A DNA stretch of 58,345 bases from Leucoraja ocellata (taxonomy: Eukaryota): assembly GCA_036785375.1 (NCBI GenBank), contig JAWMAR010001544.1:186001-244345 (forward strand), in the 5' to 3' direction. Below are positions 1-52,265 of this stretch, piece after piece. The first letter of the stretch is position 1. Every line of letters starts with the position of its first letter. The notes beneath the pieces were generated by a model. The model worked only from the letters and a program-made list of their open reading frames with translations. It ran no database searches and was not told the DNA's origin. Made by a program: the position numbers and the translations under genes.

Positions 1-279
1 TTAGAGAAACATTTTATGTTTAAATGACATTGGGAGCCACAGACAAACATGGATTCAAATTCTCTTCCTAATAAATCCATGGATTAAACGTTATTCCAAA
101 ACTACAACTGTTCCGAAATCTCCCCATTATACATTCAACGCATTTTCCAAATGGGAAAAAATCGTGTTCTTTGACATAAAACAGGTTAGGCAGCAACTGT
201 GGAATGAGAAAACCAAGCATTTTCCATGTCGACTATCATTGGGGGACTAAACCATGGCGAATTCAGTAGAGGTATAGCA

Positions 280-525
280 TAGAAATAGACCCTTCTGCCA
301 ACAAAATCCAGGGCCACTCACAAGTTCCACGTTATCACACTATCGCATTCACCCCCGACCCACCCGGGTCAATCACCCAGGTCACTTAACCTGCAAACCT
401 GCACTCTTTTGGGTTGTGGGAGGAAAGCTGAGCACCAGTAAGAAACCACAGGGAGAACGCACAGTTCTCACCGTCTGCACCTGATTTCGGGAACGAAGTC
501 TGGTCTCTGGCGCTACAACTTGTCA
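280..525 (-). mobile_element. Degenerate V-SINE (HE1-like); paralog at about 27300-27545
   Basis: V-domain-like TTTCCTCCCACAACCCAAAAGA and a CR1-like 3' end on the minus strand. Confidence 0.55.
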
Positions 526-1083
526 TTCGGCTCCCCTCTATGGGACTTGTCTTTCGCCACAGGCTGCGTGACCCTCGAGGCGTTTGCAACATTTACTGTT
601 CCTATTTATGATTTCTAGTAATATATTCTTATTTTTATTTTTAAACATATAACTTCTTTGCGTTCATTGAAATAACATAATCGGACAACAGAAATACCCG
701 GTCGCTGCCACTCGAATTGAACGTACAAACACGTCAAACTGCGCAACAATATCGTCTCCTACAGTGACCAGCTGAATCATACCGCCGATGGGATGAATCA
801 CATAACACAAATTTGCTGAACCTCCACAAAAATCCAAATATCTCTGTCTAAAAACCACCGAAATTCATTGTTCCAATGACCACAGAGCCAATCATTGTTG
901 AAATAAAGATGAATAACACAATACACGTGGATTAACATTTCCATATAATGTGAATTTCCTTCAGTTCCTCTGTACCTAGTACACCCGGTACATTGTCATC
1001 TATAGATCGCGTTTCACGGATTTTGCTTTCTTAGCTTTGCTGTAACATTGGTTCACATGGCCAACTCATTGTACTTCAAGATA

Positions 1084-1179
1084 GACAAAACAAGTTGGAG
1101 TAACTCAGCGGGAGAGGCAGAGTTGCTCCAGCTTTGTGTCAATCGGCAGCGTAAATCAGCATCCACTATTCCTTCCTAT
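1084..1179. mobile_element. Short Penelope-derived insertion with an 18-bp target duplication
   Basis: TCATTGTACTTCAAGATA at 1066-1083 and 1180-1197 flanks a GGAGTAACTCAGCGGG...GAGTTGCTCCAGC hairpin. Confidence 0.6.
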
Positions 1180-1378
1180 TCATTGTACTTCAAGATATAT
1201 AACTGCGCAATTAACCCTGACCCTTGCACTTCTGTGTTTTGCTGCAAGATATTTTTACTTCTTCCGTGCAAGTTTTGTTAGCGATTGGATTAAAGGTGGC
1301 AAGGCGATTTCACCAATTAATACATACACTTTAAATACTTGAACATTTTACACCCAGGATTTATCCGTTACTATGTTT

Positions 1379-1598
1379 AAGAAGGAACTGCAGATGCTGG
1401 AGAATCGAAGGGTACACAAAAAAGCTGGAGAAACTCAGCGGGTGCAGCAGCATCTATGGAGCGAAGGAAATAGGCAACGTTTCGGGCCGAAATCCTTCTT
1501 CAGACTGAATAAGGGTTTCGGCCCAAAACGTTACCTATTCCTTCGCTCCATAGATGCTGCTGCACCCGCTGAGTTTCTCCAGCTTTTTTGTGTACATG
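1379..1598. mobile_element. Penelope-derived palindromic element with minimal hammerhead motifs; 18-bp TSD
   Basis: Inverted repeat 1412-1595 centred near 1504; TSD TTATCCGTTACTATGTTT at 1361-1378 and 1599-1616; paralog 28382-28553 lacks part of one arm. Confidence 0.75.
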
Positions 1599-2003
1599 TT
1601 ATCCGTTACTATGTTTGTTTCATATGCGCTGAGAAGAAACAAACTGAGACCAAGTACCCGCTGTTGATTAGAAAATACAGTTCGATGCATCGCAGATCAA
1701 GGACCACAACAATCTCAAACAATTAGAAAGCATAGTGAAAGCAAATTGATGCAAAATGTTCCACTAATTTGGAACTAAACCGCATCCACTTCATAGTCAA
1801 AGGATCGAAAGTCATAGCACATAATGCGTTTAAATCGGCAATCTCACTGCAGCAAAATCACATAACATTCTAAAGCAACATCGATCCAACATTGCAATGA
1901 ATGGGTAATTAATGTAGAAGAACAATTTAAGATAATTATTGGAAATATAGGTTAAAATTACAACTGGATACATCTAGAGACTGAATAGGATAAAGTTTCT
2001 TAC

Positions 2004-2051
2004 CGCTGGTTACCGTCACCATGGTTCCTCCTCCCCAGTAGTCAAGATAGG
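2004..2051 (-). CDS. IGHJ: JH of cluster A (YLDYWGGGTMVTVTS) with 23-RSS at 2052-2090
   Basis: WGxG motif, GTAAGA donor at 2003, RSS CACGGTG-23 nt-ACAATAACA. Confidence 0.95.
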
Positions 2052-2416
2052 CACGGTGTTACATTCTATGGGGCTCTTCACACAATAACATGATCTGCAC
2101 AAGGCAGGCAAAAAAAGAACAAAAATCCTGTCATTATTCGTATTTCACATCTAAAGCAGATGCCATTGCTCTTTGAAAACAATGAATGCATTAAAAAAAT
2201 CATTTCCAACAATAATCACATACCACGGCCCCGTGTATTAAACAGGGCAGTGAAATGTGATAAGAATCATCTACATATAAAATATAAATTAACTCAAATT
2301 ACCTCTACAATAAAATATGCGGAAATATTCCTGGACATGTTTATGCTCCTGTTGTATGAAATATTAAATTGAAAATATCATATACTGGCCCAGATCACAG
2401 TATTATGGGTTGCGGA

Positions 2417-2481
2417 TGTTTTTGTATTGGTAGGAACCGCTGTGCCATATAGTCACAGTGAAACATGTCATGTCAAATACT
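2417..2481 (-). other. D2 segment of cluster A (core ACTATATGG, 2445-2453) with 12/12 RSS
   Basis: 5' RSS: heptamer 2454-2460, 12 nt, nonamer TCAAATACT 2473-2481. 3' RSS: CACAGCG 2438-2444, 12 nt, ACAAAAACA 2417-2425. Confidence 0.92.
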
Positions 2482-2733
2482 TCGCTCTTCAAGAACTGAT
2501 GCATGTACAGCTAACAGAGGATGGATGTCCCAGGGGACTCTTCGCTGTCACTTATAAAGCTAAACGCTGTTCTTCTAAAGCTCATATAAAATAACGTTAA
2601 TTGTTCGGAAGACAGTTGGACATTTCTCAAAACAATCCATGTAACTTTAAGTGGTGAAAATTCATTAGAATTTGCTTCACACGGCCTATCCTCCGGTGCT
2701 TGTAGGTTGGAGCAGGATACAACTAGGTGCCCA

Positions 2734-2771
2734 GGTTTTTGTACGAGGAAGTCGCTGTTTGCAGCACTGTG
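2734..2771 (-). promoter_or_regulatory. 22-bp-spacer RSS 3' of D1 (cluster A)
   Basis: CACAGTG-22 nt-ACAAAAACC; spacer identical to the D1 3' RSS of cluster B (29693-29730). Confidence 0.95.
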
Positions 2772-3085
2772 ACCCCACTGTATACTCGCACAGTAATAGA
2801 CAGCGGTGTCTTCGATCTTCAGGTTCCTGGCGATCACGGTGAACATATTATTCGAATTGTCTTTGGACGGAGTAAATCGGCTCTCGATCCCTGGAGCGAA
2901 TGACTTGTCAGAAGAAGAGTAGTAGTAAAGCAGCCACTCCAGCCCCTGCCCGGGGACCTGACGGACCAAAGACATATAGGTGCTGCTAAGAGTGAACCCG
3001 CTGGTTTTACAGTTCAGTGTGATGGAGCCTCCAGGAACCGCGGTCCCTGTCTTGGGCTGAGTGAGAACGATCTCGGAATGGACAC
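2772..3085 (-). CDS. IGHV: IgH cluster A V exon already joined to D1 ([10 protein letters not shown]...YYCASIQWG)
   Basis: ttgcag acceptor at 3086; open V domain with both Cys, [11 protein letters not shown] and EDTAVYYC. After TGTGCGAG the sequence runs straight into TATACAGTGGGGT and the D1 3' RSS, with no V RSS and no V-D1 spacer. Confidence 0.95.
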
Positions 3086-3263
3086 CTGCAAGTTAAAAAA
3101 AAGGCATGAATGGCGAGGATAAAATATTGACCATTACTCCCCCACTCTAATTATCAATATGAAATAAATTGGGAGGGTTCTAGAGTGGGTAGAAGGGGAA
3201 TGGTGTCTGTAGGGGATATAGCACTGAGAAACGTGTGAGGAATTTGTCCAACTCATTACTCAC

Positions 3264-3309
3264 GGACTATTAACGCCAGGAACAGACTGAGTGAAACCGC
3301 CGACATCAT
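3264..3309 (-). CDS. IGHV: IgH cluster A leader exon (MMSAVSLSLFLALIV)
   Basis: ATGATG start, hydrophobic signal peptide, phase-1 GTGAGT donor at 3263; nearly identical to 30624-30669. Confidence 0.93.
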
Positions 3310-4416
3310 CCCGCTAGGAAGTGTGACCCGGTTGTTTCTGTACAGAACCTCGCAACAAACCCACTGCAAGGAAGTTGGACTTCGGCCCCTCTTAGAGAGA
3401 ATTAAATACCCGGCAAAAGTGGGCGCGGCTGTGGGTGGGACCAGTGGTGCCGCGGGCGGAGCTGAGACACGGCTCCAAACTCAACAGCGAGATGGACTCA
3501 CGATATCACATCTATTAACTGATACACATGCACACGAGGTTAATAAAACAGCATGCTATTCCACCCCTTACATAATATAAACTCACGGTATAGTTGTAAA
3601 TAAGATGGTTGAAAGATTGGTCTCATCGTGCAGTTTTTCGTAAAATAAGTTCGGAATTCCTCAAATTTATATTAAAATGCTTCGTGGTGTGCGTGTGCTT
3701 GCGTGTGTGAGAGGGAGAGAGAGGAGAGAGGAGAAAACATATTTGAGCAAGAANNNNNNNNNNNNNNNNNNNNNNNNNNNNNNNNNNNNNNNNNNNNNNN
3801 NNNNNNNNNNNNNNNNNNNNNNNNNNNNNNNNNNNNNNNNNNNNNNNNNNNNNNNNNNNNNNNNNNNNNNNNNNNNNNNNNNNNGACATAAAATGCTGGA
3901 GAAACTCAGCCGGGACAAGCAGCATCTCTGGAGAGAAGGAATGTGTGACGTTTTGGGTCGAGAGCCTTCCCCAGACCTCCAGAGACACTGCCTGTCCCGC
4001 TGAGTTACTCCAGCATTTTGAGTCTAGCTTCATTTAAAGCAGCATCTGCAGTTCTTTCCTACACATTCGTTGTTATCAATATGAGCCGTTCGAACAATAT
4101 TGGGACTGTCCATTCCAATATCAAGATCCATTTATTTGTCACATGTCCCAGTTGCTACAGTGAAATGTGTGGTCACCGTACAGCCATACAGATAAAATGT
4201 CAATATCGAGATTGGTTACAAAAAAGGCAGTAGAGGAAATTGATAACAAAGCAAACACAAAATTCTATTAAAATGTCATGAAGAGGTCGGAAGGAAATTA
4301 ATGGATGGCATAGTGCAGGAGGGGAATTGTAGATCTGTGGAGCGATTGGAGAAATGATCGGCATTAGGGATGATTCATGTGGTGTTGATTTTCAGATGCT
4401 GCTTCCAATGAACAAA

Positions 4417-5003
4417 GAAAGATAGAAACAGAAAATAGGTGCAGGAGTAGGCCATTCGGCCCTTCGAGCCTGTACCGCCATTCAATATGATCATGGCTGA
4501 TCATCCAATTCAGTATCCCGTACCTGCCTTCTCTCCATATCCCCTGATCCCTTTAGCCACAAGGGCCACATCTAACTCCCTCGTAAATATAGCCAATGAA
4601 CTGTGGCCTCAACTACCCTCTGTGGCAGAGAATTCCACAGATTCACCACTCTCTGTGTGAAAAATGTTTTTCTCATCTCGGTCCTAAAAGATTTCCCCTT
4701 TATCCTTAAACTGTGACCCCTTGTCCTGGACTTCCCCAACATCGGGAATAATCTTCCTGCATCTAGCCTGTCCAACCCCTTAAGAATTTTGTAAGTTTCT
4801 ATAAGATCCCCCCACAATCTTCTAAATTTTAGCGAGTACAAGCCGAGTCTATCCAGTCTTTCTTCATATGATAGTCCTGACATGCCAGGAATCAGTCTGG
4901 TGAACCTTATCTGCACACCCTCTATGGCAAGAATGTCTTTCCTCAGATTTGGAGACCAAAACTGTACGCAATACTCCAGGTGTGGTCTCACCAAGACCCT
5001 GTT
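4417..5003 (-). mobile_element. CR1 LINE 3' fragment
   Basis: [15 protein letters not shown]...VVNLWNSLP C-terminus and CR1-type 3' UTR. Confidence 0.85.
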
Positions 5004-5138
5004 GAATGAAGGCACATTCTAACCAATCAATCAATGAGCATATTAGTTGGATAGTGTTTCAATGGACTGGTAGGGCGGATGGTGTAGAAAAATCTAATAG
5101 AGATATCTGAAGAAATATCACTGTACTCACTCTATACT

Positions 5139-6420
5139 AACCTGGCCCTCAACACCAGCAAAACTAAGGAATTGGTTGTGGACTTTAGAAGTAGTAGGAT
5201 GGGACCCACAGCCCCGTTTATATCAACGGGTCAATGGTTGAAAGGGTCAAGAGCTTCAAATTCCTGGGCATGCACATCTCTGAAGATCTTTCCTGGGCCG
5301 AGAACACTGATGCAATTATTAAGAAAGCACATCAGCGCCTCTACTTCCTGAGAAGATTACGGAGAGTCGGTTTGTCAAGGAGGGCTCTCTCTAACTTTTA
5401 CAGGTGCACAGTAGAGAGCATGCTGACTGGTTGCATCGTGGCTTGGTTCGACAACTTGAGCACCCTGGAGAGGAAAAGACTACAAAAAGTAGTAAACGCT
5501 GCCCAGTCCATCATCGGCTCTGACCTTCCTTCCATCGAGGGGATTTATCGCAGTCGCTGCCTCAAAAAGGCTGGCAGTATCATTAAAGACCCACACCATC
5601 CTGGCCACACACTCATCTCCCTGCTACCTTCAGGTAGAAGGTACAGGAGCCTGAAGATGGATCATCAATCAGGCAAGCAAAATAACTGGCAAAACTCAAA
5701 ATCAATGATCAGTACTCCACACCCAGGCAGTTAAAAGGAAAGCCAATCTCATTACACAGGATCCCACCCACCCTCTGCACAAGTCTTTCCAACTTCTGCC
5801 ATCAGGCCGCCGATATAAAGTCCCCCTATCCAAGAAAAACATCCACAAAAACTCATTCATACCCATTGCCATAAACAGCTTAAATAGAAAATGAACAATG
5901 GACAAATTAACCCTGACGCATTGTCACTTTACACGTATCCACAACTTTTATCTTGTCTATTTTTACAGTTTTTAATCTTTATATTTGCTTTTAAGATCGA
6001 TACACACTGTGTGTGCTCGCAGAAATCTGTGTTGTATGACTGCTTATCAGTACATTGTCCTGTCTGTATGTTGACCCACGTCAAAGAAGATTTTCTGTTA
6101 CGACAGACAATAAAGTTTTCTGAATCTGAATCTGAATCTGAATCTGAACAACCAGGTTCAGGAATAGCTACTTCCCCACAGCCATCAGGCTATTAAACCT
6201 GGCTCGGACAAAACTCTGAACATTAATAGCCCATTATCTGTTATTTGCACTTCATCAGTTTATTTATTCATGTGTGTATATATTTATATTACGGTATATG
6301 GACACACTGATCTGTTCTGTATTCATGCCTACTATGTTCTGTTGTACTGAAGCAAAGCAAGAATTTCATTGTCCTATCAGGGACACATGACAATAAACTC
6401 TCTTGAATCTGGAATCTTGA
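5139..6420 (+). mobile_element. Rex1/Babar-like LINE 3' fragment interrupted by a second LINE 3' end (about 5658-6147, (GAATCT)n tail)
   Basis: VERVKSFKFLG...KKAHQRLYFLRRL...[10 protein letters not shown]; the uninterrupted paralog is at about 31955-32890. Confidence 0.8.
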
Positions 6421-6544
6421 GTTATCTGAGGAGATAGATAGAAACAGTAGTTACCCGATTTGTGAGGAAAACACAAGGAGTATTGAAAATTGTAATGTGC
6501 ATATGGGCAATTATAGTTTCCTGTACTCCAACATAGCATTCTTC

Positions 6545-7604
6545 TTAAACTTAAAGCACATGGTATTGGGGGATCAGTATTGATGTGGATAGAGAACTGG
6601 CTGGCAAACAGGAAGCAAAGAGTAGGAGTAAACGGATCCTTTTCACAATGGTAGGCAGTGACTAGTGGGGTACCGCAAGGCTCAGTGCTGGGACCTCAGC
6701 TATTTACAATATATATTAAAGATTTGGACGAGGGAATTGAATGCAATCTCCAAGTTTGCGGATGACACGAAGCTGGGGGGAAGCGTGAGCCCCGCAGCTT
6801 CCACAGTTTAAGGATAAGGGGGAAATTGTTATTTAAATGGTGGCCGATTAGGAAAAGGGGAGATGCAACGAGACCTGGGTGTCATGGTACACCAGTCATT
6901 GAAAGTGGGCATGCAGGTGCAGCAGGCAGTGAAGAAAGCGAATGGTATGTTAGCATTCATAACAAAAGGATTTGAGTATAGGGGCAGGGAGGTTCTACTG
7001 CAGTTGTACAGGGTCTTGGTGAGACCACACCTGGAGTATTGTGTTCAGTTTTTGTCTCCTAATCTGAGGAAAGACATTCTTGCCATAGAGGGAGTACAGA
7101 GAAGGTTCATCAGACTGATTCCTGTGATGTCAGGACTTTCATATGAAGAAAGACTGGATAGACTCGGCTTGTACTCGCTAGAATTTAGAAGATTGAAGAG
7201 GGATCTTATAGAAACTTACAAAATTCTTAAGGGGTTGGACAGGCTAGATGCAGGTAGATTGTTCCCGATGTTGGGGAAGTCCAGAACAAGGGGTCACAGT
7301 TTAAGGATAAGGGGGAAATCTTTTAGGACCGAGATGAGGAAAACATTTTTCACATAGAGAGTGGTGAATCTCTGGAACTCTCTGCCACAGAAGGTAGCTG
7401 AGGCCAGTTCATTGGCTATATTTGAGAGGGAGTTAGATGTGGCCCTTGTGGCTAAAGGGATCAGGGGGTATGGAGAGAAGGCAGGTACAGGATACTGAGT
7501 TGGATGATCAGCCATGATCATATTGAATGGCGGTGCAGGCTCGAAGGGCCGAATGGCCTACTCTTGCACCTATTTTCTATGTTCTATGTTTCTATGTTTC
7601 TATG
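6545..7604 (+). mobile_element. CR1 LINE 3' part with internal deletion; paralog about 33010-34350 has a doubled 3' end
   Basis: [12 protein letters not shown] and MQRDLGVMVH... motifs; (CTATGTTT)n tail. Confidence 0.85.
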
Positions 7605-48420: not shown

Positions 48421-51400
48421 GATTCTGAAAGCATTTGACATGGTCTCCGACCCGTGGAGCTGGAGACCACCACCCGACCCGGGGAGCTGGAGACCACCAC
48501 CCGACCCGGGGAGCTGGAGACCACCACCCGACCCGTGGAGCTGGAGAACGCCACCCGACCCGTGGAGCTGGAGACCGCCACCCGACCCGTGGAGCTGGAG
48601 ACCACCACCCGACCCGTGGAGCTGGAGACCACCACCCGACCCGTGGAGCTGGAGACCACCACCCGACCCGTGGAGCTGGAGACCACCACCCGACCCGTGG
48701 AGCTGGAGACCACCACCCGACCCGTGGAGCTGGAGACCACCACCCGACCCGTGGAGCTGGAGAACGCCACCCGACCCGTGGAGCTGGAGAACGCCACCCG
48801 ACCCGTGGAGCTGGAGACCACCACCCGACCCGTGGAGCTGGAGACCACCACCCGACCCGTGGAGCTGGAGACCACCACCCGACCCGTGGAGCTGGAGACC
48901 ACCACCCGACCCGTGGAGCTGGAGACCACCACCCGACCCGTGGAGCTGGAGAACGCCACCCGACCCGTGGAGCTGGAGACCACCACCCGACCCGGGGAGC
49001 TGGAGACCACCACCCGACCCGTGGAGCTGGAGAACGCCACCCGACCCGTGGAGCTGGAGACCACCACCCGACCCGTGGAGCTGGAGACCACCACCCGACC
49101 CGTGGAGCTGGAGACCACCACCCGACCCGTGGAGCTGGAGAACGCCACCCGACCCGTGGAGCTGGAGACCACCACCCGACCCGTGGAGCTGGAGACCACC
49201 ACCCGACCCGTGGAGCTGGAGACCACCACCCGACCCGTGGAGCTGGAGAACGCCAGGTAAGCCCCGGGGCTGGAGACCATCAGCAGAGCCGCGGGGCTGA
49301 AGACCGCCTGCGGAGTAACGCAGACGCGGAGCAACGGAGCGGCAGAACACCAGCGCACCAAGCCAGCTCGGCCCACCAGAAGCACCAACAGACGGTGACG
49401 GGTACGAAAACACCGCCGGGGACGCAGAGGTGGGTTAAAGGCCAGGTTAGAGCTAGCCCCACACAGGGCAGCGATTCCTAGCCTTTTCCTCGCCAACGTG
49501 CGCTCACTGGCAAACAAAATGGATGAACTCCGGCTAAGGATCACCTCCCACAACCGGATCAAGGACTGCAACATCCTGATCTTCACTGAAACTTGGCTCA
49601 ACACTGACGTTCCTGACAGCGCCATCCAGCTATCGGGGCGTCATTTACTCCGAGCGGACAGGACATCAGACTCTGGTAAGACCAGAGGGGGGGGCCTGTG
49701 CATTTATGTAAACAAAGCATGGTGCACGGACTCCACCATCATCGAGAGTCACTGCTCAGCTAACCTTGAGTTCCTCTTGGTTAGATGCAGACCGTTCTAT
49801 CTGCCCAGAGAGTTCACCTCCACTGTTGTGACTGCAGCCTATATCCCTCCTGATGCTAATGCCAAGCTTGCAATGAAAGAGCTGCATACTGCCATTAGCA
49901 AACAACAGACGCACAACCCCGAGGCAGCCTTCATTGTTGCGGGTGACTTCAATCACTCCAACCTGAAGACTGTACTCCCCAAATTCCACCAACATGTATC
50001 CTTCCCCACTAGAGTAGACAAGACACTGGACAAAGTCTACACCAACATGGCTGAAGCTTACAAAGCCATCCCCCTCCCCCACCTTGGTCAGTCTGATCAC
50101 GTCTCATTGTTCCTGCTCCCTAAGTACTCCCCACTCATCAGACGGGTTAAACCAACTGTAAGGACAGTTAAAGTCTGGTCAGAGGAAGCGGACTTCACAC
50201 TTCAGCAGTGTTTTGGAAACACTGACTGGAAGGCATTTGCAGCCCAGGCCACCCTTGACTCTCACACGGACATTGATTCCTATACATCCTCTGTTCTGGA
50301 CTTTATAAACTCCACCATCAATAGTGTCACCTCCCTCAAACAGGTGACCATATACCCGAATCAGAAGCCATGGATGAACAGCGAGGTCAGGCTACTGCTG
50401 AAAGCACGGGACACCGCTTTCAGGTCAGGCGATGCTCGAGCCTACAGTTCATCCAGGGCTAACCTGAAGAGGGGCATCAGGAAGGCCAAGCACTGCCATA
50501 AGCTCAGGATTGAGGAGCACTTCAACAACAACTCCGACCCCCGACGCATGTGGCAAGGCATCCAGGCCATCACGGACTACAGACCCTCCAACATCACCCC
50601 CACATCCAGCGACGCCTCCTTCCTTGAGGAGCTGAATCACTTCTATGGCCGCTTCGACAGGGACAATCTAGAGACAGCCATCAAGGCTGTGCTACCTGCC
50701 GATCACCAACCCCTCACACTCACCCCCTACGACGTGTACGTGGCACTGAGTAGGACTAATGCACGTAAGGCTGCTGGCCCTGACGGCATCCCCGGGCGCG
50801 TGCTCAGTGCCTGTGCTGCGCAGCTGACAGACGTCTGGACTGACATCTTCAACCTGTCACTTGCCCAAGCAGTTGTCCCCACTTGCCTTAAAGCCACCTC
50901 CATCGTGCCAGTGCCAAAACACTCAACTGCGGCAAGCCTCAACGACTTCCGCCCAGTTGCACTTACCCCCATCATCACCAAGTGCTTCGAGAGGCTGGTC
51001 CTGGCACACCTCAAAAGCTGCCTACCCCCCACACTGGATCCCTATCAGTTTGCCTACCGCAAGAACAGGAGTACGGAGGATGCCATCTCAACGGCATTTC
51101 ACTCCGCCCTCTCCCACCTCGAGAACAGAGACACTTACGTAAGAATGCTGTTCATCGATTACAGCTCAGCATTCAACACCATTATACCCTCTAAACTGAT
51201 GACCAAACTCGGTAACCTGGGCATCGACCCCTCCCTCTGCAACTGGATACTGGACTTTCTAACCAACAGACCCCAGTCTGTGAGGTTAGACAAGCACACC
51301 TCTTCAACCCTCACCCTGAACACCGGCGTTCCTCAGGGCTGTGTGCTGAGCCCCCTCCTCTACTCCCTCTTCACCTATGACTGCACACCTGTACATGGTA

Positions 51401-52265
51401 CTAACACCATCATCAAGTATGCAGATGATACAACGGTGATTGGCCTCATCAGCAACAACGATGAGCTGGCCTACAGGGAGGAGGTCCAGCACTTAGCAGC
51501 ATGGTGCGCTGACAACAACCTGGCCCTTAACTCCAAGAAGACCAAGGAGCTCATTGTAGACTTCAGGAAGTCCAGAGGCGGCACACACACCCCCATCCAC
51601 ATTAACGGGACGGAGGTGGAACGTGTTTCTAGCTTCAGGTTCCTGGGAGTCAACATCTCCGATGACCTCTCTTGGACCCACAATACCTCTACTCTGATCA
51701 AGAAGGCTCATCAGCGTCTCTTCTTCCTGAGGAGACTGAAGAAGGTGCATCTGTCTCCTCAGATCCTGGTGAACTTCTACCGCTGCACCATCGAGAGCAT
51801 CCTTACCAACTGCATCACAGTATGGTATGGCAACTGCTCTGTCTCCGACCGGAAGGCATTGCAGAGGGTGGTGTAAATTGCCCAACGCATCACCGGTTCC
51901 TCGCTCCCCTCCATTGAGTCTGTCCAAAGCAAGCGCTGTCTGCGGAGGGCGCTCAGCATCGCCAAGGACTGCTCTCACCCCAACCATGGACTGTTTACCC
52001 TCCTACCATCCGGGAGGCGCTACAGGTCTCTCCGTTGCCGAACCAGCAGGTCGAGGAACAGCTTCTTTCCGGCCGCTGTCACTCTACTAAACAACGTACC
52101 TCGGTGACTGCCAATCACCCCCCCCCCCCCCCGGACACTTATTATTTTTTTTTTTTATTCAAATCGTTTGCTATGTCGCTCTTCAAGGGAGATGCTAAAT
52201 GCATTTCGTTGTCTCTGTACTGTACACTGACAATGACAATTAAAATTGAATCTGAATCTGAATCA
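48421..52265 (+). mobile_element. Near full-length Rex1/Babar-like LINE (APE-RT ORF 49498-51876, one premature stop, (GAATCT)n tail)
   Basis: LANVRSL.NKMDEL, FTETWL, VAGDFN, SDH and YADD motifs; frame continues past TAA 51874 to about 52107. Confidence 0.93.
48447..49255 (+). repeat. 27-bp minisatellite, about 30 copies (CCGACCCGTGGAGCTGGAGACCACCAC)
   Basis: Directly visible; reads (VELETTTRP)n in ORF 48454-49260. Confidence 0.97.

Follow-up and report, generated by a model that had tools for sequence, protein, structure and literature searches.

The window analysed here, 58,345 nucleotides of the forward strand of a Leucoraja ocellata contig (GCA_036785375.1, JAWMAR010001544.1, positions 186,001 to 244,345), contains two IgM heavy-chain clusters, A and B, which lie in tandem on the minus strand and are 95-97% identical to each other. 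They stand about 27 kb apart, as a previous reading of the letters by a model (the sequence-only reading) had given. The organisation is of the cluster type. Cluster B is complete and runs from leader through V, D1, D2, J and the C exons to a transmembrane-like ORF; its four C exons were all matched as C1-set domains in Pfam (E=6e-10 to 6e-21). Cluster A presents a leader, V, D1, D2 and J. The window start falls inside the J-C intron of cluster A, the C exons of which lie beyond it, and runs of N are present in the window. The features of both clusters are collected in Table 1.

Table 1. Features of clusters A and B; positions are counted from the first letter of the window.
Feature	Position	Strand	Description
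Cluster A leader exon	3264..3309	-	ATGATG..., 46 nt, then GTGAGT donor; 96-97% identical to cluster B leader
Cluster A V exon	2786..3085	-	open frame, ends TGTGCGA (Cys-Ala); Pfam V-set E=7e-16
Cluster A junctional GTA	2783..2785	-	palindromic to the first three bases of D1, TAC
Cluster A D1	2772..2782	-	TACAGTGGGGT, complete and fused to V; occurs once in the window (exact match)
Cluster A D1 3' signal	2734..2771	-	CACAGTG 2765-2771, 22-nt spacer 2743-2764, nonamer ACAAAAACC 2734-2742; intact
Cluster A D2 and signals	2417..2481	-	D2 2445-2453 ACTATATGG; 5' 12-RSS: heptamer 2454-2460, spacer 2461-2472, nonamer 2473-2481; 3' 12-RSS 2417-2444
Cluster A J and 23-RSS	2004..2090	-	J 2004-2051 YLDYWGGGTMVTVTS, GTAAG donor; heptamer 2052-2058, spacer 2059-2081, nonamer 2082-2090
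Cluster B V exon (unjoined paralog)	30147..30450	-	ends TGTGCGACAGA; Pfam V-set E=7e-16
Cluster B V 23-RSS	30108-30146	-	CACAGTG, 23 nt, ACAACAACG
Cluster B V-D1 intervening segment	29744..30146	-	403 bp, from V 23-RSS to D1 5' 12-RSS; absent in A
Cluster B D1 5' 12-RSS	29744-29771	-	GGTTTTTGT, 12 nt, CACTGTG
Cluster B D1	29731-29743	-	TACAACAGGGAGT
Cluster B D1 3' RSS	29693-29730	-	CACTGTG, 22 nt, ACAAAAACC
Cluster B constant region	14946..24706	-	CH1 24449-24706; CH2 within 22671-23105; CH3 within 20360-20932; CH4 and secretory tail within 18237-18662
Cluster B transmembrane-like ORF	14946-15227	-	no Pfam match; assigned from a hydrophobic stretch only

Comparison of the window with itself by BLAST showed that positions 1-7594 are repeated at 27020-34065 in collinear blocks of 95-98% identity. 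Substitutions alone separate A from B by 1.8-3.0% in the cluster core and by 4.6-5.0% farther upstream. A further 14 indel events were counted in 6318 aligned bases, and the differences are found across the whole 7.5-kb duplicated unit. One stretch of A, 4144-4700, has no counterpart in B and represents a transposon difference. Divergence over 7.5 kb, in places far removed from the V promoter, shows A to be a locus of its own rather than B in mutated form. The sequence-only reading had called the duplication recent, which holds in a relative sense only, given 1.8-3% substitutions in the core and up to 5% upstream.

The clusters lie among mobile elements. LINE-type ORFs with endonuclease and reverse transcriptase are found around and between them at 10600-13890, 43790-46135 and 49498-51876, and an ORF at 10600-11535 shows a GDSL-lipase/esterase-like domain, as in some LINE ORF1 proteins. 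The minus strand at 40530-43578 carries a 642-aa ORF with an RVT_1 reverse-transcriptase match, and the ORFs after it give a weak SAM-like match of the phage-integrase type; the element resembles a retroelement of the DIRS (tyrosine-recombinase) type. At 48447-49308 about 30 copies of a 27-bp unit (96% match) are arrayed in tandem inside long ORFs of both strands, beside a retroelement ORF, and a second array with a 30-bp unit lies at 47377-47658.

The recombination signals of both clusters were compared with the textbook heptamer and nonamer consensus. The V nonamer of cluster B, ACAACAACG, shows two departures from the consensus ACAAAAACC, and the D1 3' heptamer reads CACTGTG in B as against CACAGTG in A. 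No exact match to the promoter octamer was found within about 450 bp upstream of the leader, in A and B alike, so that the promoter has no bearing on the reading of the joint.

Alignment of the two clusters with BLAST and MAFFT gave a single large gap in the cluster core. It sits at V-D1, where A 2781/2786 faces B 29739/30151 and 411 bp are absent. Cluster A lacks the 403-bp signal-to-signal segment that divides V from D1 in cluster B, and retains D2, J and their signals. A regular expression for RSS-type sites found six in the 58-kb window, all within the two clusters (two in A and four in B), compared with a mean of 0.02 and a maximum of one in 100 shuffles. The only RSS-type sites of B that are absent from A are the V 23-RSS and the D1 5' 12-RSS. 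The breakpoints in A lie 0-4 nt from the heptamer borders, and by a rough estimate a random deletion would have both ends so placed, no more than 4 nt from the two borders, with a chance of about 5e-5.

The sequence-only reading was accurate on this region. It had placed the segment, including both signals, at 29744-30146 of cluster B, which coincides exactly with the 403 bp from one coding end to the other, and had stated that precisely this segment is absent from A, leaving an in-frame CASIQWG; BLAST, MAFFT and the RSS scan showed this to be correct to the base. D2 and J of A, described as unjoined with intact RSS, were indeed found with both segments and their signals intact. The consensus 22-RSS said to be left on A corresponds to the consensus-like heptamer-22-nonamer signal on D1, and the weak V nonamer of B had been rightly described; a functional meaning of its bypass by the join is speculative. 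Separately, a re-inserted copy of the excised segment or a germline signal joint was ruled out within the window, where the 403-bp segment has no second copy (best other match 19 nt) and where no head-to-head heptamer pair was found with up to two mismatches.

Sequencing reads were consulted as Logan contigs. Searching found 24 public runs, the best of which held 0.55 of the sampled words, and four were used: X1, X3 and X4, which are DNA runs from three studies, and X24, a bulk RNA run. Over this multi-copy family the contigs are short, the pieces listed being 92-421 letters long, contigs resembling human DNA were dropped, and holes in the coverage prove nothing.

At the joint, cluster A reads ...TATTACTGTGCGA GTA TACAGTGGGGT CACAGTG, then 22 nt and ACAAAAACC (2734-2800), and the frame stays open throughout, giving ...YYCASIQWG. 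The V end of A is 4 nt shorter than that of B. In X1 and X4 there are contigs that agree with A as far as 2782 and go on with CACAGTGAGACAGACCCGCACAAAAACC..., and the loose letters shown (26 in X1 and 30 in X4, out of 211 in all in X4) are identical to the D1 5' RSS of cluster B. Because these contigs leave A at 2782 into a B-type 12-RSS, the germline D1 of A's lineage is TACAGTGGGGT. With the border of the unjoined D1 at 2782, D1 in A is full-length and GTA next to it a palindromic (P) addition of 3 nt. GTA is the reverse complement of the first three bases of D1, TAC, and the chance of a 3-nt palindrome is 1 in 64.

A palindrome of P nucleotides arises when a RAG-made hairpin is nicked off-centre. 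On the letters of the joint, GTA can be taken for P nucleotides left when a hairpin coding end was opened, and so for the probable mark of a RAG hairpin joint. Its G could alternatively be the last V base, if the ancestral V end of A was unlike that of B, or an N base. The joint bears the coding-end marks of V(D)J recombination, with a trimmed V end and P nucleotides (GTA next to TAC) against a full-length D1, and it is explicable without untemplated (N) bases. A processed transcript copy is excluded, since the leader intron, D2 and J are all retained in A. We conclude that the deletion in cluster A is a V(D)J-type coding joint, and an origin as a RAG-type VD1 joint is well supported.

Cluster B had been presented as a near-identical paralog of A, the two forming a pair of 'before' and 'after' states. 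The first description applies to the flanks and the V frameworks, with their 1.8-3.0% substitutions, and in the V end at 2786-2900 there is a single difference between A and B. It does not apply to D1, whose 13-nt tract is TATACAGTGGGGT in A but TACAACAGGGAGT in B, with differences between the two at several places. B is hence a paralog, close in its flanks and unjoined, but not literally the 'before' state. Judged from the contig letters, the proper precursor is the unjoined D1 that appears in X1 and X4.

The V exons of A and B differ by 13 bases in nine events, seven replacement and two silent, and all four events in the CDRs are replacements. Tandem substitutions make up three of the nine events in V compared with 10 of 164 elsewhere (Fisher p=0.02), and the three in V, at 2901-2903, 2971-2972 and 2980-2981, all fall in CDR1 or CDR2. 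Other read contigs also leave A inside the CDRs, with loose ends at 2900, 2928 and 2970. The ratio of seven replacement to two silent events, the occurrence of tandem substitutions outside V as well, and the contigs departing in the CDRs together lead us to read the V differences as ordinary paralog diversification rather than as a sign of a somatic joint, although the CDR differences may have a hypermutation-like origin.

Collectively the data indicate that cluster A is quite probably a partly germline-joined IgM heavy-chain cluster of a cartilaginous fish, in the configuration VD1-D2-J. From the assembled letters we infer that the joint is germline, as it is present in the assembly consensus and as A differs from B along 7.5 kb. 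The joint would have arisen after the lineage of A split from that of B, and cluster A would be expressed. The proposal of a pre-joined VD1-D2-J cluster in the sequence-only reading is thus borne out in its structure, its in-frame joint and its RAG-type anatomy, but the joint is not bridged by the contigs listed in X1, X3 and X4.

More precisely, none of the 24 pieces listed for these three runs (there are 248 further pieces) bridges 2783-2786, and in X4 the depth is zero at 2807-2948. Forty places were listed at which contigs carry letters other than those of A; 20 of these coincide with differences between A and B, and the letter is that of B in 20 out of 20. At ten A/B-different places (1825, 1992, 2074, 2159, 2298, 2413, 3451, 3563, 3573 and 3648) X1, X3 and X4 show the B letter only. 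Either the letters that A has at these ten places are peculiar to the assembly, or the samples of the three runs lack cluster A; the exact cluster A was in either case not found in them. An X1 contig at 2622-2719 (depth 16.3, no differences) carries the A letters at 2688 and 2692.

A contig in X3, of depth 101, joins J to the 5' RSS side of D2 (2050 to 2454) with eight letters between, which shows a D2-J-joined form at high depth in another sample of these fishes. This form, and a joint in A that calls for no N bases, add indirectly to the case for germline status. In the RNA run X24, 0 of 12.9 million records could be placed, which is no test of expression.

Protein searches were made with two queries. 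The 154-aa ORF that runs from V over the joint into the RSS gave seven matches, the best at 62% identity, and none spans the joint. The V-D1 exon gave 48 matches, the best at 64% identity, among which there was no independent copy and no cDNA-like protein with CASIQW. The closest relatives of V are the VH of Chiloscyllium, Heterodontus and Scyliorhinus at 61-64% identity, followed by Callorhinchus at 58%.

A more dynamic version of the germline reading, which we think unlikely, holds that the V-D1 joint is a very young RAG event still segregating, with joined and unjoined versions coexisting, and that a small loss at D2 is a second RAG footprint. The suggestion of a segregating joint comes from X1 and X4, where this very D1 is found unjoined, beside a flank that matches A. 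At D2, A has ACTATATGG where B has TATACTATATGG (2445-2460 versus 29401-29419), so that A is 3 nt shorter (TAT), and the three missing bases abut the 5' heptamer exactly. The state of A looks derived, since D2 begins with TATAC in other read contigs as well (loose ends at 2448 and 2453). Of the 14 indel events, 0.013 would be expected to fall on a border of this kind, of which there are six. Judged from these letters, the loss could be a germline open-and-shut RAG cut or could be due to chance, and a single 3-bp indel makes thin evidence. If both elements were true, germ-line cutting of Ig clusters by RAG would be a recurrent and present-day process in this species, which genotyping could address directly.

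A competitor to inheritance of the joint is that the assembly caught a lymphocyte VD-D-J rearrangement of an unjoined cluster. The available parts of PMC2435157 document VD-D-J as a lymphocyte intermediate in the nurse shark, very frequent in thymocytes, and report that partly rearranged loci can carry tandem hypermutations. A somatic joint would also suit the unjoined form of the same D1 in X1 and X4, the lack of a bridging contig among the pieces listed, and the enrichment of tandem substitutions in V with their location in CDR1 and CDR2. It nevertheless appears quite unlikely for several reasons. At any locus the consensus of an assembly is set by most of the reads, and every lymphocyte joint should be unique. 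Outside its joint, and promoter-proximal hypermutation aside, a somatic copy should be identical to a germline cluster of the same animal, and B, the only unjoined relative in the window, does not fit that expectation. The differences between A and B run over 7.5 kb, far past the reach of hypermutation, and rise to 4.6-5% far upstream. Furthermore, ten tandem events lie outside V, other contigs leave A within CDR1 and CDR2, and the joint requires no N bases.

About as improbable, in our judgement, is a germline joint brought into A by gene conversion or unequal crossing-over, with an older joined cluster as its source, or one that reflects A and B units which were already different; in both cases A and B would not be the two states of a single event. 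The contrast between D1s that differ at several places and flanks that differ by 2-3% would fit such a history, as would the multi-copy nature of Ig clusters, seen here in contig depths of up to hundreds with many variants. Opposed to this, the 3' part of V (2786-2900, one difference) and the 3' flank of D1 are as close to B as the rest, with no visible boundary of a conversion tract, and the substrate that an event in place requires is known from an unjoined cluster that has this D1 beside a B-type 5' RSS.

We consider it very improbable that A and B are two haplotypes of one cluster misassembled in tandem, with the joint confined to one allele. The duplicated unit is long and collinear, the window begins in the J-C intron of A and there are N runs in the window, all of which would be compatible with misassembly. 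A divergence of 1.8-5% with 14 indel events and transposon differences is, however, high for alleles, and the entire constant region of B stands between the two units, as in a tandem array. An ordinary deletion of the V-D1 spacer by replication slippage or end joining without RAG deserves next to no credence: deletions of such size do occur between paralogs (14 indel events) and nothing more specific speaks for it, whereas both ends lie at heptamer/coding borders, the 3-nt insert is palindromic, the frame is kept and there is no evident microhomology between the two borders in B.

Under the preferred reading of a RAG-made germline joint, the following sequence of steps is proposed. The starting point would have been an ordinary V-D1-D2-J cluster in an ancestral germ line, which RAG cut at two signals, the V 23-RSS and the D1 5' 12-RSS, and the signal-ended piece of roughly 400 bp would have been lost. 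Both hairpin coding ends would then have been opened and ligated, with V trimmed by a few bases and D1 presumably retained at full length together with the 3-nt palindromic addition. The product seen in cluster A is an in-frame V-D1 exon with the D1 3' 22-RSS, followed by D2 with two 12-RSS and J with a 23-RSS. By the 12/23 rule a lymphocyte is therefore expected to need two rather than three rearrangements at cluster A, and the start of its CDR3 to be largely fixed.

Germline-joined antibody genes are classic evidence for RAG acting outside lymphocytes and reshaping antigen-receptor loci in evolution. As reported in the available parts of the literature cited here, germline VD-, VDD- and VDJ-joined H-chain clusters of sharks have been known since 1988 (horned shark, Kokubu et al. 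1988, as cited in PMC2193156, PMC5192425 and PMC4279169), and Ig clusters of cartilaginous fish are described as partly (VD-J, VD-DJ) or fully (VDJ) germline-joined through RAG in germ cells (PMC5192425, PMC4279169). A RAG and hairpin origin of germline joints was argued in 2000 by Lee et al. (PMC2193156). The attribution of such IgH clusters to RAG in germ cells, which the sequence-only reading had put forward as established, agrees with what these three sources state (PMC2193156, PMC5192425, PMC4279169), and the joint of cluster A is consistent with this published view (PMC2193156).

The joined clusters of the horned shark, as the citing papers present them, resemble cluster A in being of the IgM type, in carrying a genomic V-D fusion and in having downstream segments with signals. 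They differ in that A fuses D1 only and leaves D2 and J free (VD-D-J), whereas the reviews name VD-J, VD-DJ and VDJ; they also come from another species, the V of A being 61-64% identical to shark VH. Our literature search found no paper naming a germline VD-D-J form separately, with the 1988 horned-shark work known through the papers that cite it.

The same configuration is known somatically. According to the accessible text of Malecek et al. 2008 (PMC2435157), the nurse shark somatic 1R intermediates are VD-D-J, identical in configuration to cluster A, and the deleted interval is similar (roughly 400 bp). These intermediates are confined to the DNA of lymphocytes, that of erythrocytes yielding the germline band (PMC2435157), whereas the joint of A is in a genome assembly; the distinction rests on tissue of origin.

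Further parallels, again as far as the available parts of the sources describe them, come from the nurse shark and the chicken. Nurse shark IgM1gj (PMC5192425, PMC4279169) shares with A a part of CDR3 that is fixed in the germline, and for germline-joined genes such as this an expression advantage early in life has been proposed (PMC5192425, PMC4279169). IgM1gj is, however, fully VDJ-joined and lacks one C domain, whereas cluster A still needs two rearrangements. Chicken VH pseudogenes (PMC2193156) likewise have a fused VD in the germline, but they are promoter-less donors for gene conversion, whereas A possesses a leader and an intron and, farther downstream, D2 and J together with their signals.

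Closest in the kind of evidence are the nurse shark NS4 VJ genes, which in the parts of PMC2193156 at hand comprise joined and split members similar enough for reconstruction, as with A and B, and show RAG-like hairpin joints that are recent and not archaic. The NS4 genes are light-chain genes with a one-step VJ joint, studied in several libraries and animals and with expression in pups, whereas A is a partial heavy-chain joint known from an assembly. The same source describes germline joints of H chains as hard to dissect, with varied junctions (PMC2193156); unlike those, the heavy-chain joint of A is easily read base by base.

The value of cluster A lies in this legibility. The trimmed V, the 3-nt palindrome and the complete D1 can each be assigned per base, with an unjoined paralog 27 kb away and a matching unjoined D1 in reads. 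Cluster A is thereby well suited for teaching and as a test case, and it offers a convenient target for learning if joints of this kind are fixed or polymorphic; the accepted picture stays unchanged. The phenomenon is already known from the sharks; cluster A is a further example, whose modest merit is a heavy-chain joint readable base by base beside an unjoined paralog.
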